Source of the DNA: Heteronotia binoei
Taxonomy: Eukaryota
Direction of reading: 5' to 3'
Length of the DNA stretch: 64,000 nucleotides
Assembly (NCBI RefSeq): GCF_032191835.1
Contig: NC_083239.1
Location: 40,052,001 to 40,116,000, forward strand
The notes under the pieces were generated by a model. The model was not told the DNA's origin, made no database searches, and saw only the letters and a list, made by a program, of their open reading frames with translations. Below, in pieces: positions 1,442 through 56,077 of this stretch; the first letter of the stretch is position 1, and every line of letters starts with the position of its first letter. The translations under genes were made by a program, and so were the position numbers.

Positions 1442-1999
1442 CGCGCAAGTGGATTTTGGCCTTTGGCACCTCAAATCCAGCTGCGAAGTGCCCTGAAAAT
1501 GGATTGAAAGTGCATTATTCTGCAAGTGTGAAAGTGGCTACAAAGAAATGACTTATCTCGGCTTTGAGAACACTGCTGGCTTTTGGGCACAGCACACTGC
1601 CTTCCCTGAGTCAGGTCTAGCAAGGTCAGGATCGCCTGCTCTGACCAGCAGCAGCTCCCAGGCAGAGAGGTCGTTCCCATCTCCTCCTGCCTGGTATCGA
1701 ACCTGGCACCTTGTGAATGCCAAGCCGAGGCTCCCCCGCCGAGCCCCACAGTCCCTCGCACTGCTGGGAGAAACTGAAACTGCGGCCAATTCCGCGCTAG
1801 GCTTTTAATCCTGGTCCAGCCCTGTCCCCAGACTGATTTTCTACACCAGAAACAGAGAAGCAAAAACTCATAGAGTGGGTCTCTATGATTCCATGATTCA
1901 AGTACAGAATTTCAGTTTGGGGACAAGGCTGGACCAAGATTAAAAGTCGAGTGCGGAAGTGGCCTGTGTCTTCGCATTGCAAACCTGCAAGTTTGGGGG

Positions 2000-30129: not shown

Positions 30130-31523
30130 TATTTATTTATTTATTCCGGGATTTATATCCCGCCCTTCCCACGAGTGGCTCAGGGCGGCTTACAACAGAC
30201 AACAAAACAATAAAATCAGAATAAATTAGTTACATTTAAAATCAAGCATTTAAAAACCTAAAACCTTAAAATTAGTATTAACTATAGAGTTATCACAGAA
30301 ATCTAAAAGCTACATTTATCCAGTCAGGGGTAGGCTAACCAGAAGAGGGTCGTCTTACAGGCCCTGCGGAACTGGGTAAGATCCCGCAGGGCCCTCACCT
30401 CTTCCGGTAGCTGGTTCCACCACATAGGGGCCGTTGTAGAGAAGACCCTGTCTCTCGTTGTCTTGAGACGCACTTCCTTAGGCCCGGGGATGTTGAGAAG
30501 ATTTTGGGTCCCAGACCTCAGTACTCTCTGGGGAACGTGTGGGGAGAGACGGTCTCTCAGGTAGGCAGGTCCCAGGCCATATAGGGCTTTAAAGGTAATA
30601 ACCAGCACCTTGTACCGGACCCGGTATGTTATTGGGAGCCAGTGCAGAGCCCGAAGACCCGGCCGAATGTGCCCCCATCTTGGGAGGCCCAATAACAGCC
30701 GGGCCGCGGCATTCTGCACCAGCTGCAGTTTCCGGGTCCGGCACAGGGGCAGCCCCATGTAGAGGGCATTGCAGTAATCCAACCTCGAGGTGACCGTAGC
30801 GTGGATCACTGTTGCTAGGTCGTCGGGGTCCAGGAAGGGGGCCAACTGCCTTGCCCGTCTAAGATGAAAAAACGCGGACTTGGCAGCGGCCGCTATCTGG
30901 GCCTCCATCTTTAGGGACGGCTCCAGTAGCACCCCCAGGCTTCTGACCCTGTCCGCTGGCCTCAGCAGTACTCCGCCAAAAGTTGGCAGGGGGATTTCCC
31001 CCCCCGGTCCCCGATGGCCCAAACAAAGGACCTCTGTCTTCGCAGGATTCAGTGTCAGTCCACTCAGTCTGAGCCACTCAGCCACAGCCTGTAATGCCTG
31101 ATCTAGGTTCTCTGGGGCGCAGACCGGTTGGCCGTCCATAAGTAGATAGAGCTGGGTGTCATCAGCATACTGGTGGCACCCCAGCCCATACCTTCGGGCA
31201 ATCTGGGCAAGAGGTCGCATATAGATGTTGAATAACATCGGGGAGAGAACCGCTCCCTGGGGCACCCCACAGTTAAGTGAGCGCCTCTGGGATAGCTCCC
31301 CCCCAATAGCGACCCTCTGTCCCCGACCTTCAAGGAAAGAGGAAAGCCACTGCAAGGCTAACCCCTGAATCCCCGCGTCGGCGAGGCGGCAAGTCAGCAA
31401 CTGATGGTCGACCGTATCGAACGCTGCCGATAGGTCCAACAACATCAGTACCGCCGAGCCACCCCGATCCAGATGCCGTCGAAGGTCATCCACCAGGGCA
31501 ACCAACACCGTCTCCGTCCCATA
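30130..31523 (-). mobile_element. L2 LINE, 5' truncated, with an open RT-region ORF
   Basis: 394-aa ORF with LLDLSAAFDTVDH, GVPQGAVLSP and YADDTQLY; (TAAA)n tail at about 30130. Confidence 0.93.
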
Positions 31524-35461: not shown

Positions 35462-36583
35462 TTAAACGTCAGACTCAAAGGCTTTGATGAGAACATTGTG
35501 AGCATCGTCTGCTACTTCATTGAGGGAACTCTGGAGCATGTGGTAGGTGGTTCCAAAGGAGATCCCCCCAGCAGCCAGAGAACCAAATATGGGCACTATG
35601 CTAGCATAATACTTAGCCATCATCAATGCCCTGTCTCCAGCCTTGCTCAGCATCTTCAACACCACATCCTTGGAGATCTCCCTGGCCAAGGGGGACTTAA
35701 TCACCCCTTTGATCTCCTCCACAGGCTTGCCCACCTTCTCTGCCAACTTCTCCAGGGTGTAGTCATCCAGGCCAAAGCTCTTGTGGTACTCCGAGAGGGT
35801 CTTGATCAGGATAGTCACGTCGCAGGCCATGGAGAATCCTGGGATGGGCACTGCTGCCACAAAACATGAGACAGTAGCAAGCTTCCAGATCTGCTTCTTT
35901 AAGGCCTCCTTCTTTTTGTGTAAGATTTCTAGAGAGACGTTGGGCAGGGCAAGGAGGAAGGCGTGTCTCTTGTGGCTCGGAAGCTCTTTCTCCAAGGTTT
36001 CCCGCAGCAGCACAAAGTCATACTTGCTCAGCTCCCAGTTGCAAAGGAGAAAGATACACGGTGATACCACTTTTTCAGCCTCCAGGCACGCTTTGCAGTT
36101 CTCACGGATCTGTCGCAGGATGTCCTCCTCATTGTAGGCATGTGGTCGACGCTTTTTGGTGGCCTCCAGGTCCGCGTCTACTTTGGAACGTACAAAATAG
36201 AAGCGTTTGCCCTGCTTCTCAATCTCTTTGGCCAGATGGGCATGGTTGGCTTTGAAGCGTTCTGAGGCGATGAGAATAAAGAAGTCATAGCGGGAGAAGT
36301 TCACCTGTTCCAGGTAAGTGTCAGACTGGAAGTTGGGTGTACCGATTCCTGGCAAGTCCCAAACCGTCACTTTGGGATGCTTGGGGTGCAGGTAGGGAGT
36401 TGGCTTTACAGTCGTCTTCACCACCCCGGTGGGGGCAGATCCATCGTCTTCATCTCCTAGGCCTCGGATGGCGTTAACAAAAGAGGACTTCCCGGAGCCA
36501 GACTCTCCTATTACTGCGATATCAAGACAAGCGTTTTCCAAGGCCTGCAAGTTTTCCATGATCTTGGAGGCAGCATCTGCCAT
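35462..36583 (-). CDS. IRGC: IRGC-like immunity-related GTPase, paralog A (373 aa from the first in-frame ATG; frame open back to the acceptor at 36690/36689)
   Basis: GESGSGKS, DLPG and SKVD motifs; IRGC-type C-terminus (GGISFG..Y.ML...LNEVADDA); single coding exon; tail-to-tail with SMG9 as in human. Confidence 0.88.
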   Translation of the reverse strand: MADAASKIMENLQALENACLDIAVIGESGSGKSSFVNAIRGLGDEDDGSAPTGVVKTTVKPTPYLHPKHPKVTVWDLPGIGTPNFQSDTYLEQVNFSRYDFFILIASERFKANHAHLAKEIEKQGKRFYFVRSKVDADLEATKKRRPHAYNEEDILRQIRENCKACLEAEKVVSPCIFLLCNWELSKYDFVLLRETLEKELPSHKRHAFLLALPNVSLEILHKKKEALKKQIWKLATVSCFVAAVPIPGFSMACDVTILIKTLSEYHKSFGLDDYTLEKLAEKVGKPVEEIKGVIKSPLAREISKDVVLKMLSKAGDRALMMAKYYASIVPIFGSLAAGGISFGTTYHMLQSSLNEVADDAHNVLIKAFESDV

Positions 36584-36878
36584 TCTCCCTCCTTCAAGAG
36601 CATCTTTAATCTCTTCAATGTTCTCAATGTCACATTCTCCTGTGAGCTCAGCCACTGGGGGCTGAACCGTCCCCGGGTCAAGTCGACGCCTGAGAGGAAA
36701 GGGGGAAAGAAAAATACAATGTTTATCATGAAACCTTTAAAAGAAACAAGTCTTTGTAACTTGTTTGAAACAAGTAATTTTTCTCCTGGCCAGATTGGTA
36801 AGGGATCCTGGAGGTTTTTGCCATCTTCTGGGCATGGAGTAGGGATCACTGTGCATGTATGTGTGGGTGGGAGGTATT

Positions 36879-39890: not shown

Positions 39891-40690
39891 CTGATCCCCA
39901 AGGAGCAGCACCAGACGTCCGCAACAAGAAAGAGGTGACGTGGAGTCTGGAGGAGTCTCAAGAGAGATCGAAGTTGCTATGGGACGTGCAGGTTTCGTTT
40001 CCTGCTTCTATTCAAACCCGGACTTGTTGCCAGGGGCGGGATGTATTAAAAACGAATGACAAAATTGTCCATAGAAAACAATGGGAGAAGCTGGATTGTC
40101 CGTAGGATATAATGGGAGAGAAGATTGTCAGTATGGGCTCCAGGGGCTACTACAATCACACACAGTAAATAATGCACTTTCAATGCACTTTCCAAATGGG
40201 TTTCGCCTGTTCACCTAGTAAAATCCAGTTGGAAAGTGGATTGAACGTACATTATTAGGGCGTCTGCCTGTGATCGCAGCCAGAGTGTATGTGCGCATGG
40301 GAGTTAAGGACTTTTGCCTGCTCTCCCCCCCCCCCGCCCCCTTAAGGCGGGCGTGGAAAGGCACGTGTTTTATCTACGTGCAAACAAACCCCATTTGTTT
40401 CCAGGGCGGACTTCGAACCGGAATCGGAGAGCGGAGCAAAGACTACTGCAGACGCTCAGAGCAATTGGAAAGAAAGGGAGGGGAAAGGGAAAACCCGGGG
40501 GGGAAATCCGCTGCTGTTCAACTTCGCCCTGCAGGTAGCTAGATAAGGATGTCCGCCGAAGAGAGACCAGGCGCAGGCAGATCCCGGCTAGATCACGTGG
40601 AATATAAGAAAGTGAAACTTGAAATGCTTTTTTTTTTGTGCGATTTCTCATCAAAAGAGAGAAAATGGCCGAAGGACCAGCTCAGATCTC
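39891..40690. promoter_or_regulatory. Bidirectional promoter P1 with the first exons of IRG paralog A (minus) and the unknown gene (plus)
   Basis: ISREs AGAAAGTGAAACT at 40607-40619 and GGTTTCGTTTCC at 39991-40002; RFX-like GTTGCTATGGGAC at 39973-39985; CACGTG; donors CAG|GTGCAT (minus, 39891) and CTC|GTAAGT (plus, 40690). Confidence 0.7.
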
Positions 40691-43388
40691 GTAAGTACCA
40701 AAGCGCGGCAGAAGGAAAGAGTCGATCTAGGGTTATTATTATTATTTAATGGTGAGAATTGTTAATATTCCACCGCCCGACCCAAAGCACTTTGCAGGAT
40801 CCCTGCAAATATTACAGCTGCAATTCCCCACCCCCGTTTGTAACTTTGAAAGGGGATCTTGCACTGGAGATGTGGTTCGCTTGGAATGCTTTCTCCCTGT
40901 ACAGAATCGCGCAGAACTGGCGCAGGCGCAGCATCCTTCAGTGTTGGGTCTACCCCACGCTGTTCTTTCGGCAGGTTTTCACTTATCCGGAAAGATTTTC
41001 ATTGAAAGAATATGCCATTTAGAGTTAATTTTGGAAAAGTTTAACGCAGGTAGGTAGTACTCTGTGTCTGTTTGGAAAGAGCTATGGATAGGATTGCCAG
41101 CTGGGAAAGACCTGGAAATGTGGGGGTTGGGAAATACCTGGAGATTTTGGGGGTGGAGCCTGAGGAGGGCGTGGTTTGGGGAGGTGGAAGGACTTTAATG
41201 GCTTATATATGGTGCCATAGAGTCCCACCTTCCAAACCGACATTTTCTCCAGAAGATATTGGATACTGGATTTATATCCCGCCCTATACTCTGAATCTCA
41301 GAGTCACAGAGGGGGTCACAATCTCCTCTACCTCCCCCCCCCTCCCACAACAGACACCCTGTGAGGTGGGTGAGGCTGAGAGAGCTTTCAGAAGCTGCTC
41401 TTTCAAGGACAACTCTTGAGAGAGCTATGGCTGACCCAAGGCCATTCCAGCAGCTGCAACTGGAGAAGTGGGGAATCAAACTCGGCTCTCCCAGAAAAGA
41501 GTCCGCGCACTTTACCACTACACCAAACTGGCTCTCTCCAAGCACACTGATCTCACCTCTCTCTCACCTGGAGAAAAGTGGTAATCCCAGGAGATCTCCA
41601 GCCACCACCTAGAGATTGGTAGCCCTGACTGTGATCCTTTTTGCCATTCGGTTCATTGGGCTCACGGTTTGCTACTCTTGGCTACTCTTGGCAAACTGGC
41701 CAAGGTACCATACAGAGAAAAGGATTTCCTGACACTTGTTACTCCGAGCATTAAGGGGATGTATGCAGTTCTGGAGCACAATTTGGGAAGGTAACGATGG
41801 AATAGGAGCAAGTAATTGAGCCAACACACCAGGCTGCCTTATACTGAATCACACTGCCGATTCAGCATAGTCAATCTTGTCTTCTCAGAACGGCAGCTGC
41901 TCTTCCGGGTCTCAGGAAAAGGTATTCTGCACCCCCAATTACCTGATCCTTTTATCTTGAGATGCCAGGGATTGAACCTGGGACCTTCTGGCGTGCACAG
42001 CAGATGCTTTACCACTGAGCCATGGCTCCACCCCCCTTATAGTGTTCTTTTGGGTATGTCAGGTGAGCAAGGAAGGTTCTCCTTCTCCAAATACTCAGGT
42101 TCTGTTGTTAGTCCCTCGGCAGTTGCATGCTAGAGAAAAAGATGGCGACCTTTCAACATTTCCTGTCACAACATTTTGTATTTACTCTAAACTTAAGCAT
42201 CCCAGGGCAAGGAGAAGTAGCTTGCAGCTTTAAAAAAAAATCAAAGTACAGAATGATGTCTTTGAATTATTACCTCCCCATTCTTTTGGGGGGGGGGGAG
42301 GAGGTTGCACTAATCTCTGCCAGTTCCCCCCTCAGGGCTTCGGAGAGTCCTCCTAAAAGGGATTGGAATGCAGTACTGATGAGTACTACCACAAAAAAAG
42401 CCCTGTTAGCTTCCAAAATTAATGTCAAATCTCCCTCTCTTCCTTCCTTTCTTCCTCCCTCCCTCCTGTTTTTAGGAACATGGCTGACCTCTTCAGAAAC
42501 GGCATCCAGTGGGCCCTCAGTGGATTCCTCCGATCCTTTCTAACACAAGTTAAGAGAATCCTGATGGTGTCCACCACAATGATTGTGGCTTCTGTTCTCT
42601 TGTCTGCCTTCTGGCTCACTCTGGAGAAGGCGGATTATTCTCTCTCAGCCTCTGGGCATGAGATGGCTGTGAACAACAAGCATAAGTGGGCCCCGCATGG
42701 GATTGTCAGCATCCTAAGGGACTTCCTGCAGTATGCATCCATCCTGTTGTCCTCCTATGAACCGCTGAGCCTTGGGAACCTCCTGAGGCACCGCGATCGG
42801 CTGAGCGGGGTGAACTATATGCTCCAGGCTTGTTTCAACGAAGCCATCGACGGCTTTAATCAGGAGCCTGTCTTGGTGCAACAGAATTCCAAAATGGTCA
42901 TCCAGTGTGACGGACAAACCGTGCAGTTCCTCGCCGGCAGCGGGGACTGCGAGATTTCAGTGTATCTCTTGCACAACGCCATCCATTTCGACGTCCGGGA
43001 GCGGACTGCCGACATGTACCTCGCTCGGCTGTCCAGACGCCAGGAGCCATTGAGTGTTCGCGATCTCCTGAGGGTGAAAAGTGAGTTACAGTCCTGGGGG
43101 GTGCTTTCGGAAGAACTGCGGGGCTGCCTGGAGTTCACGGTGCAGGAATACGCCAAGGAGCCTTTGTGCGTCCAAGACAACGCCAACCTGGTTGTAGACT
43201 GTGGGGGCCAAGTGGTGAGGTTTGCTTCCGGGCGTGAGAACAACCACATCAATGTCTTTGATGTACGGGATGGCACCATTCACTACCGCGTCAAGATCTC
43301 AAGTCTTTGGGCCAGCACCGTGCGGTTCTTCAACGGGAACAGGGACCACGCCCAAACACGGGGGATGAAGCTGTTGCAGTTAGAATGA
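40665..43388 (+). CDS. Uncharacterised 312-aa protein with an N-terminal hydrophobic anchor and two tandem ~95-aa repeats; join 40665-40690, 42476-43388
   Basis: 302-codon ORF after a polypyrimidine-AG acceptor; upstream AAAATGG exon with a GTAAGT donor joins in frame (MAEGPAQIS-NMADLF); internal repeat conserved at protein level; AATAAA at 43666. Confidence 0.85.
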
Positions 43389-45805
43389 GCCAACGTTCAC
43401 TCCTGCGTAACTTGAAATGTGTAGATATGGTGTAGTTCTTCCAGGATGACGCCACATTGGGTGCTGCGTTTGAATCTCCCATGTTTAAAAACTCCCCTAA
43501 ATGTTTTTATTCATGAAAAACTCTCTTCGGACTGCATGTGACTGTCAGTTCCATTTTGGAATTATCTTCCACTGAGGGGGGGACCCCCAGATCTTCTTGC
43601 TTGTAGAAAACGAGTACATCAAAGAGAAGGCTAGGCTTTCAACCATAAAACAGAAATTGCAAAATAATAAAGCCTTTTCCCTAGCTTTCCACAGGCAGGG
43701 GGACATTTTATACATGGGTGTGTGTTTAAATAATGGTGCAGGAAGACCACCAAGGAAGTCCAGAGTTTCAATGCAGAAGCAGGCAATGGTAAACCAGCTC
43801 TGAATGTCTCTTGCGGAATATATATATATGAGACTTGTCACCTTCCACCTGCAATTCAAAGTGGTTAAACCCAGGAAAGGAACTGGCCCCATTTCTGTAT
43901 GGTTGGGGAAACATCCTTGGGGAAACATACTTAGGTGGGACTTTGCTGTGGCCTAACTTCAGTGGTTTATTTGTTATTTAACGGTATAAATTTTGCCAAT
44001 TTTCAACCAGACATGTCCACAAAGAGGCTTATGGTGAAGAGAAATGTGGACTAATAAATGGTAAAGCTAACTGTGAACAGTAGACCATACCGTTGACATA
44101 GAAAGAACTGCCCCACCAATCAAATCCCAATCTTTTAATGCAGAAAATGCAAGAAAATGATTGTCTTTGCTCCCTCTAAGCTGCAGAGTCTTGTGAGCAA
44201 AAATTCTACTTTGTGAGCTACTGGCATTAAAGTTGTGAGCTCCTGCATAAATTATTGTGCTTTGGAATCATCCTTCCTGAGCTAAGACAAAAATGTGTGA
44301 GCTGGAGGCTAAAAATCTGTGAGCTAGCTCACATTAACTCAGCTTGGAGGGAATGTTGGTCTTGACTTGTCCCAGGAAAGCAGCCATGCTGGTCTACAGT
44401 AGAACTATAGTCCAGTCCAGTCGCTCCTTAAAGACCAACAGGATTTTGAGGGAATAAGCTTCCAAGAGACAAAGTTCCTTTTCTTAGATCTCATGGCATT
44501 TAAAAGCCAGCAAGGGTGTTGTTTAGGACACAACCAGAAATGATCCAGTGAAAGATGTGTTTTTCTGGGACATAAGAATAGCACGAAGCTGGCTGTGCAC
44601 TATGGGCTTCTCTATGTAAGCCACTGACCTTGTGATTAAAACTACTGAAGGCCAGTTTCTATGAAAAAGATCCCATGGGTTGCTGCAGTTTATCTATTCA
44701 CATTATTTATAGTTTGCCTTTCTCACAGGTTGGATTACACATAGCGGGTCAGTACAATCAACAAAACAGGGCATTTTGTAACCAGTGCATTAGGATTTTA
44801 GAAGTTGAGGACTACCAGAAAGAATTGAAGCACAGCATAAATATCCACAACACATTAAGCTAGGGTGTTGAACCCATTTGTTATGAGGGCTGGACCTGAC
44901 ATAAATGAGAGCTTGTCACGCTGGGCCATGTGTGTCATAAAATGTAATGCCAGGGGCTGATGGGAGTTGTAGACAAAAAACATCTGGAGAGCTACCGTTG
45001 GCCACCCCTGTCCTATTCCATTGTTGCCTCCCCAGATGGCATTCCAGAATTGCTGCTGTTTCCTGTAGCAACATGACTATTTGCTCTGTGTAATAAATAT
45101 TTTTTGTAGCTGGTTTTCTTGTCTTTATTTATTTTACTTCTGACATGACTTTTGGTCTTCACAAGGGAAAGGAGATGCGACTTTGAAAAAGAAGATGGAA
45201 ACATGACTGTATGCCTAGGATACACATCATCACATGACTTACATAAATGACTGACCTGTTCATTATTTTGTCGTATTAAGAAGCTTGGAACTAGATGCGT
45301 TATGTTGTAAAACTTGACTTGGAGCTTATGATTGCATTGAGTATATGCAAGCATTTGTGATAAGTTGAAGTCACGGTGTTTCCTTGTGATTCTGTATAAG
45401 GAAGCCTGGTGTGGCCGCCTCATTAATTTGGCTCAATGACTTGCTCCTATTCAATTGTTGTTTAGTCGCACAGTCGAGTCCGACTCTTTGCGACCCCACG
45501 GACCAAGTCACGCTAGGCCTTCCTGTCTTCTACCATCCTCCAAAATTCGCCCAGATTCATGTTACCTTCTCAGATTGTGTTCTGGAATCACGCAAGTCCC
45601 CTTAATGCTTGAAGCAACAAGTGGCAAGGAAATCCCTTTCTCTCTGTGATACCCTGACAGTGTTTGCCAGTAAGAGTAGCAAACAGTGAGTTCAAAGGAC
45701 TGAACAGCAAAAAGGATCACATCACTCTAAACAGATGCAGAGTATCTACAGCATAGAGTCCAGTAGCACCTTTAAGACCAACAATGTTTTATTCAAGGTA
45801 TAAGC

Positions 45806-48009: not shown

Positions 48010-48500
48010 CACTGTCCATAAGAATATAACATAAGAGAAGCCATATTGGATCAGGCCAATGGCCCATCCAGTCCAACACTCTGTGTCACACAGCGGCCAA
48101 AAAAAAAGGAGGCTCACAAGTGGGGCTAGAAGCCCTTCCACTTTGCCCCCCCCCCCCCCAAGCACCAAGAATACAGAGCATCACTGCCCCAGACAGTTCC
48201 AATAATATGCTGTGGCTAATAACCACTGATGGGCCTCTGCCCCATATTTTTATCCAAACCCCTCTTGAAGCTGGCTATGCTTGTAGCCGCCACCACGTCC
48301 TGTGGCAGTGAATTCCACATGTTAATCACCCTTTAGGGGAAGAAGAACTTCCTTTTATCCGTTCTAACCCGACTGCTCAGCAATTACATCGAATGCCCAC
48401 GAGTTCTTGTATTGTGAGAAACGGAGAAAAGGACTTCTTTCTCTACTTTCTCCATCCCATGCATAATCTTGTAAACCTCTATGATGTCACCCCGCAAGCG
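48010..48500 (-). mobile_element. CR1 3' fragment that truncates the third IRG
   Basis: LRGDIIEVYKIMHGMEKVEKEVLFS...RTRGHSM and a CR1 tail; tail-to-tail with another CR1 end at 47850-48005. Confidence 0.9.
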
Positions 48501-48821
48501 ATTGCAAACAACAAATATGAAGAAATCGTATTGGCTGCCATTTACCCTTTCTAGATATTCCTCAGCTTTGAAATTAGGTGGCCCAATTCCTGGTAGGTCC
48601 CATATTATTACATCTGGAACGGTGGAGTGTGGGTAGCCCACTGGCTCCATTGTAGTTTGCATCGCACCCGTTTCAGCGGCCCCCTCATCATAATCTGACA
48701 GACCTTGCAGGGCACTGACAAGGGATGATTTACCAACACCCCACGTCCCTGTGATGGCAATGTCGAGTGTGGTTTGTTCAAAAGCTTCCTGTCTTTGTTC
48801 CGTTGAGTTTTTACCACCCAT
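48384..48821 (-). pseudogene. Truncated IRG-family GTPase fused in frame to a CR1 ORF2 tail (145 aa)
   Basis: MGGKNS start; LDIAITGTWGVGKSS, TTMEP..YPH, IWDLPGIG and YDFFIF; no G4 motif or C-terminal helical domain; acceptor at 48847/48846. Confidence 0.85.
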
Positions 48822-49214
48822 GATGGCTCTTGAATATTCAGTTGATCTGAAAAATAAACACAAATATTGGGTCTGTTAACTCTGACTGCTACGTAATATT
48901 TACATGTCGTTTTCCTCATACAATCTAGATTTAGCTGTGGGGAAGGGATCAGTTTACTTGAGGTGTTTACCATGGGTAGAACAATTTCTACCCATTTCTT
49001 TGTTATATTATGGAAAGCCCTATATGGTATGGGACCAGATTCAGTAGGAGCTTACAGGAGCACAGCTCCTGAAACTTTCTGATGGTTCCCCTTCTCCCTC
49101 CCCACCTACCTTGTCCATTGAATAGTAGGTGCAGCTGCATAACAATCCCTGGATTAGGAGAGCAGGCAAGCAGCCAGCCATCAGGAGCTTTGCCACACCC
49201 CCAGCAGCCCTCAC

Positions 49215-51300
49215 TAAGAACGTAAGAGAAGCCATGTTGGATCAGGCCAATGGCCCATCCAGTCCAACACTGTGTCACACAGTGGCCAATATATGTGTGT
49301 GTGTATATACACACACACATATATATACTGTGGCTAACAGCCACTGATGGACCTCTGCTCCATATTTTTATTCAATCCCCTTTTAAAGCTGGCTATGCTT
49401 GTAGCCGCCACCACCTCCTGTGGCAGTGAATTCCACATGTTAATCACCCTTTGGGTGAAGAAGTACTTTTTAAAATCCATTTTAACCTGACTGTTCAGCA
49501 ATTTCATTGAATGCCCACGAGTTCTTGTATTGTGAGAAAGGGAGAAAAGTACTTCTTTCTCTACTTTCTCCATCCCATGCATAATCTCGTAAACCTCTAT
49601 GTCACCCCGCAGTCGACGTTTCTCCAAGCTATAGCACCCCAAGCGTTTTAACCTTTCTTCATAGGGAAAGTGTTCCAAACCTTTAATCATTCTAATTACC
49701 CTTTTCTGCACTTTTTCCAATGCTATAATATCCTTTTTGAGGTGCGGTGACCAGAATTGTACACAGTATTCCAAATGAGACCTCGATTTATACAGGGGCA
49801 CTATGATACTGACTGATTTGTTTTCAATTCCCTTCCTAATAATTCCCGGCCTTTTTTATTGCATTGCACACTGCCTTGACATTTTCGGTGAGTTATCTAC
49901 CACGACCCCAAGATCTCTCTCTTGGTCAGTCTCTGCCAGTTCACAACCCATCAACTTGTATTTGTAGCTGGCATTCTTGGACCCAATGCGCATTACTTTG
50001 CACTTGGCCACATTGAACCTCATCTGCCACGCTGTCACCCACTCGTCCAGCCTCAACAGATCCCTTTGGAGTGCCTCACAATCCTCTCTGGTTCTCACCA
50101 CCCTGAATAATTTAGTGTCATCTGCAAATTTGGCCACTTCACTGCTTACTCCCAACTCCAAATCATTAATGAACAAGCTGAAGAGCATGGGACCCAGTAC
50201 TGAGCCCTGCGGCACCCCACTGCTTACCGTCCTCCACTGTGAAGACTGCCCATTTATACTCACTCTCTGCTTCCTATTAATTAGCCAGTTTTTGATCCAC
50301 AAGAGGACCTGTTCTTTTGCTCCATGACTCTCAAGCTTACTAAGGAGCCTTTGATGAAGAACTTTATCAAAAGCTTTCTGGAAGTCAAGGTAAACAACAT
50401 TTATTGGGTCCCCTTTGTCCACATGTTTGTTCACCCCCTCAAAGAACTGTAACAGATTAGTGAGGCAAGCTCTTCCCTTACAGAACCCATGCTGAGTCTT
50501 CCCCAATAACTTCTCTTCATCAATGTGCCTACTCATTCTGTCCTTGATAATGGTTTCTACCAACTTTCCCGGTATTGAAGTCAGACTGACTAGCCTGTAA
50601 TTTCCCGGATCTCCTCTGGAACCCTTTTTAAAGATGGGGGTGACATTTGCTACCTTCCAGTCCTCAGGAACAGAGGCAGATTTCAATTAAAGATTACATA
50701 TTCTTATCAGGAGATCCACAAGTTCAACTTTGAGTTCTTTAGAACTCTTGAATGTATGCCATCCGGAACTGGTGACATTAGTTTTTAATTCATCAATCAG
50801 TTGTAGGACCTCCTCTCTTGTCACCTCAATCTGACTCAGGTCTTTCAGCACCCCTTCCAAAATTAGTGGTTCTGGAGCGGGCAAACACTTCTCATCTTCC
50901 ACAGTGAAGACGGAGGCAAAAAATGCATTCAGCTTCTCAGCCATTTCCCTATCCTTCAGTAATCCTTTTACCCCTTGGTCATCCAAGGGCCCCACTGCCT
51001 CCCTGGCTGGTTTCCTGCTTCTAATATATTTGAAGAAATTTTTATTGTTGATCTTTATGTTTTTTGCAATATGCTCCTCATAGTCCGTTTTTGCCTGCCT
51101 GATCATAGTCTTGCATTTGATTTGCCACAGCCTGTGTTCCCTTTTATTAATCTCACTTGGGCTAGCTTTCCAGGGCTTAAAGGAGTCCTTCTTACCTTTT
51201 ACAGCTTCCATTACTTTGTTAACCATGCAAGCCTTTTCTTATACCTGTTTGTGCCTTTCCTAACTTGTGGTATATATTTCATCTGAGCTTCTAGGAATGT
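49215..51300 (-). mobile_element. CR1 LINE (RT region to 3' end, disrupted)
   Basis: DWKVANVTPIFKKG..DPGNYR.VSLTS, YLDFQKAFDKV, GVPQGSVLGP, FADDTKL; split across three ORFs. Confidence 0.95.
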
Positions 51301-51429: not shown

Positions 51430-51924
51430 TTTCTGCAACAGAATCTGAGCCGCCCTTTCGGCTATTTCCTCTCATTTGATAAGAAATCACTCCCCCCCCC
51501 CCCATCATTTTAAGTTTCACTTTCTTGTATTTCGCTTGATCGAGTGGGAAACCGGCCGCAGCAGTCTTGGCCGCGGACTTCCTTATCCAGCTAATGGCAA
51601 GGCGAGGTTTGCAGGCAGCGGGCTTTCCCCGGGTTCTTTCCAAGGGCACTTTTGCAGGAGTCCATCCTCGGTTCGAAGTCCGCCTTGGGAACAAAAAGGG
51701 TTTTCCCCACGCAAGATAAAAACACGTGCCTTCCAGCAGGGGTCAGGCGAGCGCCGCCATCTCTTGCGCACGCATTTACACGCGCCCCAAGACAGGAAAG
51801 TGCCTGTTTTCGGAGAAGCAGGAAGCTGCACCGGCTTGGGCGTCCTAGCAACTTCATTCTCTCTCGAGAAACGCCTTCCGAACCCACCCCTTTCCTCGTA
51901 GCCGAGTTGCTCCTTGCTGCTCAG
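51430..51924 (+). promoter_or_regulatory. Promoter P2 and non-coding first exon of IRG paralog B (inverted copy of P1)
   Basis: ISRE AGTTTCACTTTCT at 51513-51525; CACGTG; CCTAGCAAC; donor CAG|GTGCCT at 51924/51925; reverse-complement similarity to 39890-40700. Confidence 0.72.
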
Positions 51925-54841
51925 GTGCCTGGATTGTTACACACGGGTGGAAAAGGTAAAGGCGGAGGAGGGTTGGGGCAAAGGACGAGGCCGGGATGGG
52001 GGTTGCAAAGCTTTTGCAAGAAATCGACAGGCAGCCCCTTTCGAACGGCTTTGCGAAAACCTCCGCCTTCCCCAAAAAATCACAACTAGGCTTTGCAGAG
52101 CAGTGATTCCGCGGAGTAGAGGGATTGGTGGCGAGATCTGCCCGGGAGTTTCGGGACGGTCGTAGGCGGGTCTCCAGATTGCATGTTGCAAGCGGCCGGC
52201 GGATGAACAAGTCACCGAGGGGCTTCACGGGTCGTTGGAAAGGAAAGGTCCCTTGTTCAAGCACCAGTCGTTTCCGACTCTGGGGTGACGTCGCTTTCAC
52301 AGCGTTTTCACGGCAGACTTTTGATGGGGTGGTTTGCCATTGCCTCCCCCAGTCATCTACATTTTCTCCCCAGCAAGCTGGGTACTCATTTTATCCACCT
52401 CGGAAGGATGGAAGACTAAGTCAGCCTCGAGCCGGCTACCTGAAAACCCAGCTTCCACCGGGGATCGAACTCAGGTCGTTAGGAGGGGACGAAATGTGGG
52501 TTTCGTGCCTGTTTGCTAGCCCTGTTTAACCAGTTTGGTGTAATGGTTAAGTGTGTGAACTCTTATCTGGGAGAACCCGGGGTTGATTCCCCACTCCTCC
52601 CCTTGCAGCTGCTGGAATGGCCTTGGGTCAGCCATAGCTATCTCAGGAGTTGTCCTTGAAAAGGCAGCTGCTGTGAGAGCCCCTCTCAGCCCCACCCACC
52701 TCACAGGGTGTCTGTTGTGGGGGGGAGAAGATAAGAGTCCGCACACTTAACCACTACACCAAGCTGGCTCTCAGTTCCCCTGAAGAAAAGGGATTGTTTG
52801 GAGGGTGGACACTACAGCATTGTGTCCCACAGAGCTCCCTGTCTTCCCCAGGTTCCATTCTGAGATCTCCAAGAGTTTCCCAACCCTGGAGCTGGCAGCC
52901 CTAACCCCCCCCCCCCCATTCCCTGCCAGGGGCCAGAAGACACCTGGCAACCCTAGGAGCAGGAGGGGTTGCATTTCTGGATGAGAGGGAGGGATACATC
53001 CATTTTGTTGAGGCAAAGGGTTACGTGGGTTACGATTAGAAGTGATCTGAGGAGAAGATCCACATCTCTCCTATACAAGGGGCCCTTCAGTGGCTTTGAA
53101 AGGACCTAGGAAAGAGGCTGATTTGAGGCCTAGAACAAGATGGCTGCCGAGGCACCTGATGAACCAGAGTTTAGTGGAAGCCGCTCTAAAAAGTGATTTG
53201 AGATTTCTTTACGTGATGTTGAGGGGACACTGTTCCCTCAGTGGTTTTGAGGCTGAGGAACAACTGTGGGGCACTATCAGCTGTTCACTGCTCTCTGTAT
53301 TTCTCTGTGGGATTATGAAATTACATATTTATGCTTCTTAACCAAGGCTAATTGTTTAGATTATAATTTTTGCCCTTCCCCAGAGAGCAGAGCACTTGAT
53401 TTTGTTGGGGTAGTTGACTCTGTCGTCAACATGCTTCACCCCCTTGAATTTACACATAGATGTGGAGGGTCTGGTTCTCCCCTCAGGATAAAGCGGGGAA
53501 AGCCATACCTGAATAATACCGCATTCAGTTTGGGAGTCCATAGTGACTTAATCCAGATTAGTTATCCCCTTAATGCTATATGTACCAATGGTGGTTCAAG
53601 AATGGGCTTTCCTTCGGTATGGATTAAGGCGGTGAATGTGAATATTTGTATCCCCAAAGGAATAAAAAAGAGACAAATGTTGAGAGAGGTTGTATGATGT
53701 AGAAGCAGGAGCTTTGAACTATGACTGGAGAAACCTGAGTTCTAATCCTTGCTTGGCCATGAAAGTCACTGGGGAACTGGGATCGGCCATATGTGTTTAG
53801 GCCTAAATCTACCTCACAGGATTGTTTTAAGGAACAGGGGAGGGAGAACCAAATGCGTTCTTTGAACTGTTTGGATGTGGAATGGGATAAATAATACCTA
53901 AAACTGGTTGAATTTCATGTGTCTGAGTGAGTTTTGTCTCCCAGACAACCTTCAATGGAGAGCCAGTTTGGTGTAGTGGTTAAGTGTGCGGACTCTTATC
54001 TGGGAGAACCGGGTTTGATTCCCCACTCCTCCACTTGCACCTGCTGGAATGGCCTTGGGTCAGCCATAGCTCTGGCAGAGGTTGTCCTTGAAAGGGCAGC
54101 TGCTGTGAGAGCCCTCTCCAGCCCCACCCACCTCACAGGGTGTCTGTTGTGGAGGAGGAAGGTAAAGGAGATTGTGAGCCGCTCTGAGACTCTTCGGAGT
54201 GGAGGGCGGGATATACATCCAATATATCTTCTTCTTTTATCTTCTACCCCTTTCCAAAATTTCCAACCCCCCTGCAAATATGAAGACAACACTCCACTCT
54301 TGTCCATGGGTTCTTTGCCAGGATTTATCTGGCCCATATATCCTCAGTGTGTGGTGCTTGGAAACACCCTGTGCTTGGAAACATTATTTTATATCAAACA
54401 CAGATTTTTTATTTATTTGGTGTATTTTCTTCATGCTGTTTCTCTAAGCAACTTGAGGCAGTGTACATAGTTCTCCCATTTTACCCTCACAGTAAGCTCT
54501 GTAAGAAGAGCCCTGTAAGCTTTTGGAGGATTCGCTACATTAGGGACGTGTGGCCTAATATGCAAAGGAGTTCCTGCTACAAAAAAAGCCCTGAGCTTTC
54601 TTATCCTGGGTCTGTGTTGATCTGAACGTTGATGTAGTTTTAGCTCTAGTATAAAAGATGGCTGATCTCTGCAAAGGCGAAGTTTCCTTGTATCTGAGAA
54701 AAAGCTTCAAATGTTGCTGAGTGGAGGAATACGATGCAGGCTAGTGTTCCCCAAACTGAGAAAGGAAGGTCTGTTTTTAAATGTTTCACAGTAAGAGTTG
54801 TATACTCTCTCTCCTTTCCTCTCAGGCCTCGACTTGATCCA

Positions 54842-56077
54842 ATGGCGGTTCAGCCCCCAGTGGCTTTGCCCAGCAGGGCTGAGCTCATAGAAGAATATGA
54901 CATCATTACCGAAGAGGACATTGAAGAGATTAAAGATGCTCTCGAAGGAGGGAGAATGGCAGATGCTGCCTCCAAGATCATGGAAAACTTGCAGGCCTTG
55001 GAAAACGCTTGTCTTGATATCGCAGTAACAGGAGAGTCTGGCTCCGGGAAGTCCTCTTTTGTTAACGCCATCCGAGGCCTAGGAGATGAAGATAATGGAT
55101 CTGCCGCCACCGGGGTGGTGGAGACGACTGTAAAGCCAACTCCTTACCCACACCCCAAGCATCCCAACGTGACGGTTTGGGACTTGCCAGGAATCGGTAC
55201 GCCCGACTTCCAGTCTGACACTTACCTGGAACAGGTGAACTTCTCCCGCTATGACTTCTTTATTCTCATCGCCTCAGAACGCTTCAAAACCAACCATGCC
55301 CGTCTGGCCCAAGAGATCCAGAAGCAGGGCAAACGCTTCTATTTTGTACGTTCCAAAGTAGACGCAGACTTGGAGGCCACCAAGAAGCGTCGGCCACACG
55401 CCTACAATGAGGAGGACATATTGCGGCAGATCCGTGAGAACTGCAAAGCGTGCCTGGAGGCTGAAAATGTGGTATCGCCCCGTATTTTTCTCCTTTCCAA
55501 CTGGGAGCTGAGCAAGTACGACTTTGTGCGGCTGGAGGAGACCTTGGAGCAAGAGCTTCCGAGCCACAAGAGACACGCCTTCCTCCTTGCCCTGCCCAAC
55601 ATCTCTTTAGGAATCTTACACAAAAAGAGAGAGGCCTTACAGAAGCAGATCTGGAAGCTTGCTACCGTCTCGTGTGGTGTGGCAGCTGTGCCCATCCCGG
55701 GTCTCGCTGTGGTGTGTGACGTGACTATCCTGGTCAAGGCCCTTTCAGAGTACCGCAGGAGTTTTGGCCTGGATGGTGACTCCCTGGAGAAGTTGGCAGA
55801 GAAGGTGGGCAAGCCTGTGGAGGAGATCAAAGAGGTGATTAAGTCCCCCTTGGCCAGGGAGATCTCCAAGGATGTGGTGTTGAAGATGCTGACCAAGGCT
55901 GGAGGCGGAGCATTGATGATGGCTGAGTATCTTGCTAGTGCAGTGCCCATATTTGGTTCTTTGGCCGCTGGGGGGATCTCCTTTGGAACAACCTACTACA
56001 TGCTCTGGAGTTCCCTCAACGAAGTAGCAGACGATGCTCACAATGTTCTCATCAAGGCCTTTGAGTCTGACGTTTGA
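54842..56077 (+). CDS. IRGC: IRGC-like immunity-related GTPase, paralog B (411 aa)
   Basis: Acceptor at 54825/54826, ATG at 54842; G1 GESGSGKS, switch I TGVVETT, G3 DLPG, G4 SKVD, G5 SNW; about 89% identical to paralog A by hand alignment (42 differences in 373 aa). Confidence 0.92.
   Translation: MAVQPPVALPSRAELIEEYDIITEEDIEEIKDALEGGRMADAASKIMENLQALENACLDIAVTGESGSGKSSFVNAIRGLGDEDNGSAATGVVETTVKPTPYPHPKHPNVTVWDLPGIGTPDFQSDTYLEQVNFSRYDFFILIASERFKTNHARLAQEIQKQGKRFYFVRSKVDADLEATKKRRPHAYNEEDILRQIRENCKACLEAENVVSPRIFLLSNWELSKYDFVRLEETLEQELPSHKRHAFLLALPNISLGILHKKREALQKQIWKLATVSCGVAAVPIPGLAVVCDVTILVKALSEYRRSFGLDGDSLEKLAEKVGKPVEEIKEVIKSPLAREISKDVVLKMLTKAGGGALMMAEYLASAVPIFGSLAAGGISFGTTYYMLWSSLNEVADDAHNVLIKAFESDV

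Follow-up and report, generated by a model that had tools for sequence, protein, structure and literature searches.

Tetherin/BST2 and CD74 are interferon-inducible single-pass type II membrane proteins, and IRG proteins are cytosolic and membrane-associated. The gene described here comes from the gecko Heteronotia binoei, where it lies in a 64-kb stretch of DNA that was analysed as a whole (the window). Its product resembles tetherin and CD74 by analogy only: a short, probably cytosolic N-terminus, a signal-anchor, a Cys-containing part predicted to be extracytosolic, and an ISRE-type promoter element. Where BST2 and CD74 have a coiled coil or a thyroglobulin/CLIP region, the putative ectodomain consists of a tandem alpha/beta module, and no solved structure was found to be similar to the protein in sequence or fold. 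With the IRG (IIGP) GTPases (PF05049) it shares a genomic array, one of them being placed head-to-head with it, and possibly an ISRE-bearing control region; yet it carries no GTPase domain and has no sequence relation to them, and the domains of the two likely lie on opposite sides of a membrane.

The true orthologues and paralogues are predicted, uncharacterized LOC genes of squamates, turtles and alligator, such as Eublepharis LOC129343098, Zootoca LOC118086966, and Chrysemys LOC135974679 and LOC135974678. They share its repeated unit (E down to 1e-157), and the orthologues among them also share the N-terminal anchor and the two-unit layout. All of them lack a name, a Pfam domain and a described function; they carry from 1 to about 20 units and differ in their membrane-targeting parts. 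Reptile innate immunity is poorly charted, and a squamate member of this family locked in an IRG array with a conserved ISRE is a concrete candidate, open to testing, for a partner that the IRG resistance system has in this lineage.

An expressed two-exon gene under purifying selection

A 302-codon open reading frame occupies 42480-43388 on the plus strand of the Heteronotia binoei window, and spliced RNA contigs from two samples (X1 and X2) show it to be part of a two-exon, expressed gene encoding a 312-aa protein. The 631-nt record 1 of X1 covers 40499-40690 and then continues directly with 42476-42912, thereby skipping a GT..AG intron at 40691-42475 (+). Its donor, after 40690, reads CTC/GTAAGT and its acceptor, ending at 42475, reads TTTTTAG/G (slashes mark the splice sites). 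Exon 1 (40499-40690, +; the 5' limit is a minimum) contains the 5' UTR and, as read from the sequence, 26 coding nucleotides (40665-40690) beginning with the ATG at 40665; the two upstream ATGs in this exon, at 40549 and 40625, are both in other frames. Joined in frame to exon 2, the 26 nt extend the product to 10 + 302 = 312 aa. Exon 2 (42476-43800, +), delineated by records 1 and 7 of X1, records 11 and 12 of X2 and the reading frame, holds the coding part 42476-43388, which ends with the stop codon 43386-43388, and a 3' UTR that extends to 43800 or beyond. The match of X2 record 11 begins exactly at 42476, with 34 letters of that record placed elsewhere. Gekko kuhli and Paroedura picta were aligned with the window (A4), and all three geckos agree in exon 1: its coding part starts with ATGGCC, is 26 nt long and ends at a GT donor. 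The transcript level is low in the transcriptomes sampled, as seen from the read depth. SINE-like repeats lie within the intron at about 41119-41586 and 41938-42054, with very high repeat depth and loose ends.

Orthologues, all called "uncharacterized", are found in geckos, other lizards, an amphisbaenian and turtles with identities of 45-80% from geckos to turtles, and an alignment of 12 species spans the full length. The dN/dS ratio is 0.28-0.43 overall (about 0.3) and about 0.2 in the units (mostly 0.16-0.39, reaching 0.52 for unit 1 versus turtle), so that the gene is under purifying selection. A first-pass annotation, made from the sequence alone, had proposed a real and old gene here, and the spliced RNA, the orthologues extending from geckos to turtles and the dN/dS of about 0.3 bear this out.

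A tandem unit found among non-avian reptiles

The protein begins with an amphipathic segment of net charge +3, followed by a hydrophobic stretch at residues 26-47 (302-aa numbering, used throughout; 42555-42620, +) with a Kyte-Doolittle peak of 2.0 and an acidic flank behind it. This predicted signal-anchor is delimited by hydropathy and the orthologue alignment, and the transmembrane (TM) segment is kept in all full-length orthologues. Two units then follow, unit 1 at residues 84-176 (42729-43007, +) with Cys118, Cys143 and Cys157, and unit 2 at residues 177-275 (43008-43304, +) with Cys216, Cys230 and Cys241. The C-terminal tail (43305-43385, +) forms a helix and a strand in the secondary structure of both models, in which it mimics the first elements of a third unit. 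When one half of the protein was compared with the other by BLASTP, 29 of 93 positions were identical (31%, E 3e-15) in a register equal to the 95-aa period. The repeats first marked, 42732-42998 and 43017-43295, span residues 85-173 and 180-272 and have this same period, and the motif they were said to share is visible both in the half-against-half alignment and across the 12 species. The originally proposed layout of a signal-anchor with a tandem Cys-containing domain thus agrees with the hydropathy profile and the BLASTP of the halves.

A profile search of 1.8 billion proteins returned 65 representatives, 33 of them at E<=1e-30. About 24 of the 65 relatives carry an organism name, and all of these are non-avian reptiles except two weak matches. 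The named vertebrate matches are squamate, turtle or alligator only, with no named bird, mammal, amphibian or fish match in the family searches. This fits the earlier proposal of a lineage-restricted gene, as far as vertebrates are concerned, and judging from the match list a loss in mammals, also suggested before, would be compatible with it. Individual proteins contain between 1 and about 20 copies of the unit. On another chromosome, the Heteronotia binoei genome has at least 6 loci that are paralogous to the gene. In an alignment of 88 units, two Leu, a Cys, a Glu-Pro, a Phe and a Gly are near-invariant. The unit HMM finds both window units, and the protein shows the residues characteristic of this module of about 95 aa (L..L, the helix Cys, Glu-Pro and F..G). 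By these sequence comparisons, the window gene belongs to an unnamed family that is limited, among vertebrates, to non-avian reptiles.

The domain itself is probably older than this vertebrate spread, because a hemichordate match reaches an hhalign probability of 95% and fold-level matches occur in coral, scallop and oyster. Used as a query in turn, the hemichordate unit recovered only itself. Two further matches were set aside: a Penicillium protein (P0069), whose seven short matches fall on one strand region of about 38 columns, was regarded as spurious, and an alligator "fusion" with an Ig domain (P0083) as a likely merged gene model.

The unit matches no described family or solved structure

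The first-pass annotation was unable to assign a family, and neither a Pfam family, a PDB sequence nor a fold neighbour was found here. Scanning the whole protein and the 88 units against Pfam gave sub-threshold noise only; DUF5507 (PF17612) scored 12.2 and 14.5 bits against a gathering threshold of 27 and matched 1 of the 88 units. PDB sequences searched by phmmer and by profile yielded nothing at E<=10, and Foldseek with the full model yielded nothing in the PDB. Since the long N-terminal helix of the full model filled the match list of a VIA-wide search, the unit was refolded alone, giving a model with a pLDDT of 94 and a pTM of 0.87. Compared by VIA-align with 48,161 solved-chain representatives, this model reached a best Z of 4.3, with none at Z>=5. 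Foldseek found nothing significant for it in the PDB, the Swiss-Prot AFDB or BFVD, and its matches in the ESM Atlas had a TM of at most 0.42. A protein-atlas feature search gave no usable match, and literature searches turned up nothing relevant. The family of roughly 95-aa units is an undescribed domain family, and its confidently predicted unit, lacking a solved-chain neighbour, is a candidate new fold for structural work.

Among the weakest rows of the fold searches, DHHA1 domains (family II pyrophosphatase, NrnA, GdpP, AlaRS C-Ala) and OTU domains recur. They share with the unit a look of helices plus a beta-meander, but the scores remain at TM <=0.42, probability <=0.44 and E>=0.04 with no Z>=5, the defining motifs are absent and Pfam gives no match. 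DHHA1 (PF02272) was rejected on an Atlas TM of 0.36-0.42 (criterion TM>0.5), a Foldseek E>=0.16 and a VIA Z<5.

In view of the recurring OTU entries, a thiol enzyme was considered: every unit, or unit 2 at the least, would be an OTU- or papain-like hydrolase using the invariant helix Cys216 and the strand His268. In favour, the unit Cys41 is at least 90% conserved family-wide and His268 is invariant among the 12 orthologues; the His, however, is conserved only in the orthologues' unit 2 and is kept neither in unit 1 nor across the family. All OTU rows have E>=0.04, probability <=0.14 and a TM of about 0.1-0.25. Pfam gives neither an OTU nor a peptidase match on the protein or on the 88 units, and Cys41 and Cys66 occur together, which is what a structural pair would show. 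With the His not conserved and no significant match, we rejected the enzyme, which we consider very improbable. A module for binding or scaffolding would fit better, since conservation across the family is limited to hydrophobic, Cys, Pro and Gly positions.

Membrane topology and pairing of the cysteines

The flank charges, the glycosylation sites of paralogues and a position-dependent Cys pattern lead us to infer a type II topology, in which the units would lie outside the cytosol and be linked by disulfides. The flanks carry +3 before and -2 after the TM segment, and the alignment shows these charges to be kept in orthologues. In a paralogue subgroup with the same N-terminal TM layout, 34 N-glycosylation sequons are present versus 18 expected, and two sequons 48 aa apart stand at or near the start of unit 1 in at least 6 of its 8 members. 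Other family members begin with signal-like segments. With regard to the cysteines, Cys41 co-occurs with Cys66 across units, and the beta3 Cys is present in 72 of 113 non-last units versus 8 of 56 last units. The beta3 Cys of one unit is associated with Cys55 of the next (odds ratio 5.5, p 3e-4, a value that ignores kinship). The rule has exceptions, and the window protein displays exactly this complementary pattern across its units. A Cys41-Cys66 pair may pin each unit, and Cys157 and Cys230 may link the two.

The units could instead face the cytosol. Anchored in an endomembrane, the protein would then be an adaptor or regulator working directly with the surrounding IRG GTPases, for example by marking or guarding an organelle membrane, with its conserved Cys as free thiols or metal ligands. 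Its gene is embedded in an array of cytosolic IRG proteins in six squamates, the 12 orthologues have no N-glycosylation sequon where about 13 would be expected in sum, and Cys157, Cys216, Cys230 and Cys241 could form an inter-unit metal site. Some relatives, including multi-unit turtle proteins, have neither TM nor signal, and others start with Met-Gly and a nearby Cys (MGGCAS, MGNCWCSC, MGACIPK), as is typical of N-myristoylated or palmitoylated cytosolic proteins; such N-acylation-like starts would put the domain in the cytosol. The TM-less gene models, however, often start inside a unit and thus probably lack part of their N-termini. Because these models may be truncated, N-myristoylation was kept only as part of this alternative. 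By the positive-inside rule, all orthologues would be oriented the other way, the paralogues of the same layout have conserved and over-represented sequons in their units, and the dependence of two Cys positions on first or last place fits a structural pair. A cytosolic orientation is, in our judgement, unlikely.

Position in an IRG gene array and a conserved ISRE

The gene lies in an IRG gene array. An IIGP coding exon at 35462-36655 (-; Pfam IIGP E 3.5e-117) stands head-to-head with it, and another follows downstream at 54734-56077 (+; E 2.8e-114). The array comprises at least 40 IIGP matches, and the window gene sits between the first and second members. Membership of the protein itself in the IRG/IIGP family (PF05049) was rejected: it gave no match, while the neighbour genes match at E ~1e-114 to 1e-117. 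The orthologue likewise has IIGP neighbours in Rhineura, Zootoca, Paroedura, Gekko kuhli and Elgaria, placing the gene among IRG genes in 6 of 6 squamates checked; in Paroedura the annotated starts of the gene and its IIGP neighbour are about 200 bp apart, head-to-head. Chrysemys and alligator have no IIGP gene within 10 kb. The window had been taken for the SMG9-IRGC locus; the IRG part of that name stands through the Pfam IIGP matches, and the SMG9 part stays a suggestion, a Pfam Smg8_Smg9 scan of the genome having matched on another contig only.

A perfect ISRE consensus, GAAAGTGAAACT, is located at 40608-40619 (+), 46 nt upstream of the start codon and downstream of 40499, the 5' end seen in one RNA contig. 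The 64-kb window contains 3 ISRE matches versus 0.27 expected, and the core GAAAGTGAAA is invariant in the three geckos. A turtle and a lacertid have loose ISRE look-alikes only, and the element was not found in Rhineura. The previously suggested role as immune effector or receptor remains circumstantial, its basis being the position in the IRG array and the conserved ISRE-like element, and linkage to IRG genes does not by itself show a functional link.

A further alternative is a conserved housekeeping or tissue-specific membrane protein outside immunity, whose location among IRG genes and ISRE match would have arisen by chance. It would agree with the low read depth in the sampled transcriptomes, the paralogues on another chromosome, and a turtle and an alligator lacking an IIGP gene within 10 kb. 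It has to reckon, however, with IIGP linkage kept in six squamate lineages, the closely spaced head-to-head starts in Paroedura, and a perfect ISRE whose core does not vary in three geckos; lineage restriction, variation in copy and unit number and a fairly high dN/dS are moreover typical of immune families. We regard such coincidence as improbable. Even if the immune link fails, there is still an undescribed domain family to be named and modelled.

The explanation that we prefer as a whole, and to which we give slightly better than even chances, is a single-pass type II membrane protein of an unnamed family, a non-enzymatic binder responsive to interferon. A short amphipathic N-terminus would lie in the cytosol, followed by one signal-anchor helix and, in the lumen or outside the cell, two tandem copies and a capping fragment of the alpha/beta module of about 95 aa. 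The conserved ISRE would make transcription interferon-responsive, and the head-to-head IRG gene would probably respond along with it; because of this presumed response, the protein may be a binder or receptor on a membrane that serves cell-autonomous immunity. A bolder version, a new fold in an interferon-regulated family of membrane proteins that is confined, among vertebrates, to non-avian reptiles and is co-evolving and co-regulated with the expanded IRG array, strikes us as quite doubtful. Here the protein would possibly be a luminal or surface partner sensing or marking compartments that contain pathogens, with IRG proteins then attacking these from the cytosol.

A generic GAS pattern (TTCNNNGAA) was not enriched, with 30 occurrences versus 22 expected. 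An E-box, CACGTG (40594-40599, no strand assigned), lies in the 5' exon/promoter region, and its block TCACGTGGAAT is invariant in the three geckos of alignment A4.

A spliced gene with a likely 312-residue product

A 302-codon open reading frame (ORF) lies at 42480-43388 on the plus strand. As read from the sequence, an upstream ATG at 40665 opens 26 coding bases that run to a GTAAGT donor after 40690; on the acceptor side, a polypyrimidine tract and an AG end at 42475, so that exon 2 opens at 42476 and the ORF's own ATG follows after four bases. The two exons are in frame at the junction (TC/G AAC ATG), and the ten residues gained give the 312-residue protein proposed by the first-pass annotation (residue numbers below follow the 302-residue ORF). 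RNA contigs from two separate samples bear out this structure. Record 1 of sample X1 (631 nt) matches 40499-40690 and continues uninterrupted into 42476-42912, and the match of record 11 of sample X2, preceded by 34 unmatched letters, starts exactly at 42476. The remaining coding sequence and the 3' UTR to at least 43800 lie under further RNA contigs. Because a spliced contig excludes contaminating DNA as its source, the gene is transcribed and processed.

Several annotated orthologues carry a ~10-residue 'MA....N' N-terminal extension from an upstream exon, and the second Met is absent in the Hemicordylus orthologue. The exon-1 region shows 79% mean identity among the window, Gekko kuhli and Paroedura, and all three conserve the ATGGCC start, a coding length of 26 nt and the GT donor. 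The extensions and the conserved exon point to the 312-residue form as the likely product. The transcribed leader contains upstream ATGs at 40549 and 40625, neither of which is in frame with the main ATG (40665); the ORF opened at 40549 would extend over the splice into exon 2, which makes translational control through these ATGs possible. Two interspersed repeats in the intron (41119-41586 and 41938-42054) reach a summed RNA-contig depth of 1e4-1e5, with many loose ends and back-joints, and lie outside the gene's mRNA; the latter has a tRNA-like SINE head.

Conserved repeat units define an unnamed family

A hydrophobic segment (residues 26-47) precedes two copies of a ~95-residue unit (~residues 84-176 and 177-275), the layout first described; the two protein halves align in the same register as proposed, with 31% identity (E 3e-15). 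A word-indexed protein search returned 14 relatives at E 1e-69 to 1e-157, all annotated 'uncharacterized' or hypothetical, from the geckos Gekko kuhli, Eublepharis, Paroedura and Sphaerodactylus, and from Rhineura, Elgaria, Zootoca, Hemicordylus, Anolis and three turtles. An alignment of 12 sequences is colinear over the full length, and its 59 invariant columns fall almost all within the two repeats. Nei-Gojobori comparison of the window gene with five orthologues yielded dN/dS values of 0.28-0.43 for the whole protein. Most unit values fell at 0.16-0.39, with a maximum of 0.52 for unit 1 versus turtle, and the linker ranged over 0.3-1.9; these values indicate purifying selection on the domains and fast-evolving connectors. 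With spliced RNA, orthologues from geckos to turtles and these ratios, the view of a real, old gene is upheld.

A profile built from the 12 orthologues and run against 1.84 billion representatives retrieved 65 proteins at E ≤ 0.001, 33 of them at E ≤ 1e-30. Of 30 that were looked up, every protein with an organism name came from squamates, turtles or Alligator, except for one Ptychodera (hemichordate) and one Penicillium protein. The latter matched repeatedly to one strand region only. The Ptychodera match was weak in this search; aligned by hhalign with the unit profile, its segment gave 95% probability and retained both core cysteines. Foldseek against AFDB clusters also matched uncharacterized coral, scallop and oyster proteins at E 5e-8 to 5e-4, and in view of these invertebrate matches the domain is probably old in animals. 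Among vertebrates, the named matches place it only in non-avian reptiles, in agreement with the suggested lineage restriction.

According to the unit HMM, family proteins contain from 1 to about 20 units. The maximum is found in Chrysemys picta LOC135974678 (locus L003:10001-15805), ~20 kb from the turtle orthologue, whose single-exon 5.8-kb ORF encodes 1,934 residues with 19-20 consecutive units; its N-terminus starts within a unit, which casts doubt on the annotated start. At least six further family loci lie on another chromosome of the Heteronotia binoei genome. An older Alligator model, P0083 (704 residues), joins Ig V-set domains and a two-unit family member in one protein; this is probably a merged gene prediction and, if real, would be an Ig-receptor/unit fusion. 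In databases, the family consists of unnamed predictions only.

The unit as a proposed structural or binding module

The first reading could assign no family, and our searches led to the same result. Pfam gave nothing above threshold for the whole protein or any consistent subset of 88 units, and PDB sequences gave no match at E ≤ 10. The full-length AlphaFold model is confident at residues 90-290 (pLDDT 85-94), and a single-unit model (residues 176-296, 88-sequence alignment) reached pLDDT 94 and pTM 0.87. It comprises a helix, a short strand, two long helices, a short helix and a four-stranded meander, after which come the next unit's helix and strand. With this model, Foldseek yielded no hit at E ≤ 0.001 among PDB, Swiss-Prot or viral entries; VIA-align, run over 48,161 chains, gave a best Z of 4.3 and none ≥5, where its own note gives Z 7-8 as usual even for models without clear matches; ESM Atlas gave TM ≤0.42. 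DHHA1 and OTU, which recurred as weak rows, fell far short of significance and were rejected as fold relatives. Pfam, the PDB and the literature open to search yielded no account of the family.

Over the 88 units, near-invariance is limited to Leu, Leu, Cys, Glu-Pro, Phe and Gly, and conservation of His268 is confined to unit 2 of the orthologues, a pattern that suggests a structural or binding module rather than a conserved active site. Four cysteine positions were scored per unit: helix Cys41, Cys55, strand Cys66 and a beta3 Cys. Unit 1 of the window protein has Cys41, Cys66 and the beta3 Cys (Cys157) and lacks Cys55; unit 2 has Cys41, Cys55 (Cys230) and Cys66 and lacks the beta3 Cys. Paralogues with glycosylation sequons have Cys41 and Cys66 only. 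Across the family, 72 of 113 non-last units have the beta3 Cys versus only 8 of 56 last units, and units that have it tend to be followed by a unit with Cys55 (odds ratio 5.5, p 3e-4, uncorrected for relatedness). The simplest reading would be a cysteine pair within the unit and a link between units.

Predicted membrane topology

In every orthologue, Lys/Arg precede the anchor and acidic residues follow it (+3 before and -2 after in the window protein), which, by the positive-inside rule, would orient the protein N-in, C-out. One paralogue subgroup combines a conserved N-terminal '[DEK]PLL' dileucine-like motif, a transmembrane segment and two units, and contains 34 N-glycosylation sequons versus 18 expected; in six or more of the eight members, a pair of sequons with 48-residue spacing falls at the beginning of unit 1 or close to it. 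These sequons, together with signal-like segments at the start of other family members, argue that the unit acts outside the cytosol. However, the 12 orthologues contain no N-glycosylation sequon, and some relatives lack any transmembrane segment or begin with acylation-like MG..C motifs. Several gene models of these latter types visibly start partway through a unit and are possibly truncated. One paralogue has three units and a long acidic tail at the C-terminus (G000:C5:34915394-34916140, locus L008, on another chromosome of this genome; also Paroedura P0026); its conserved N-terminus, MGACIPKP, resembles an N-acylation motif, which is at odds with an extracytosolic domain, barring a missing upstream exon.

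The gene lies in an IRG array and carries a perfect ISRE

Coding exons matching Pfam IIGP (PF05049), the domain of IRG GTPases, lie at 35462-36655 (minus strand) and 54734-56077 (plus strand). An IIGP fragment at 48384-48863 (minus), covering profile positions 29-142 only, sits beside a LINE-type reverse-transcriptase ORF (49856-51226, minus) and is probably an IRG pseudogene broken by the retroelement; a second reverse-transcriptase ORF lies at 30324-31508 (minus). A genome-wide six-frame search placed at least 40 IIGP matches at 40087483-40776241 of the window's contig, an array of ~0.7 Mb in which most have open frames of ~400-460 residues and a few have stops. Outlying matches lie near 41.88 and 43.08 Mb. 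The gene is positioned between the first and second matches of the array. An IIGP gene also adjoins the orthologue in Rhineura, Zootoca, Paroedura, G. kuhli and Elgaria, and in Paroedura the two are head-to-head with annotated starts ~200 bp apart; in Chrysemys and Alligator, no IIGP gene was found within 10 kb.

A perfect ISRE (GAAAGTGAAACT) occupies 40608-40619, and a three-gecko alignment shows no change in its core or in the CACGTG box beside it. The ISRE pattern occurs three times in the 64-kb window versus 0.27 expected. Chrysemys and Zootoca have ISRE look-alikes ~2 kb upstream of the coding exon, which are unalignable and weak evidence. The IRG setting and the ISRE leave the earlier suggestion of an immune effector or receptor plausible but circumstantial; on these grounds we favour an interferon-regulated membrane-bound binder as the product, the least secure part of our interpretation. 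The two further perfect ISRE cores are at 1770-1781 (plus) and at 51513-51524 (minus), the latter flanked by the disrupted IRG copy and the IRG gene at 54734, where it may serve an IRG promoter.
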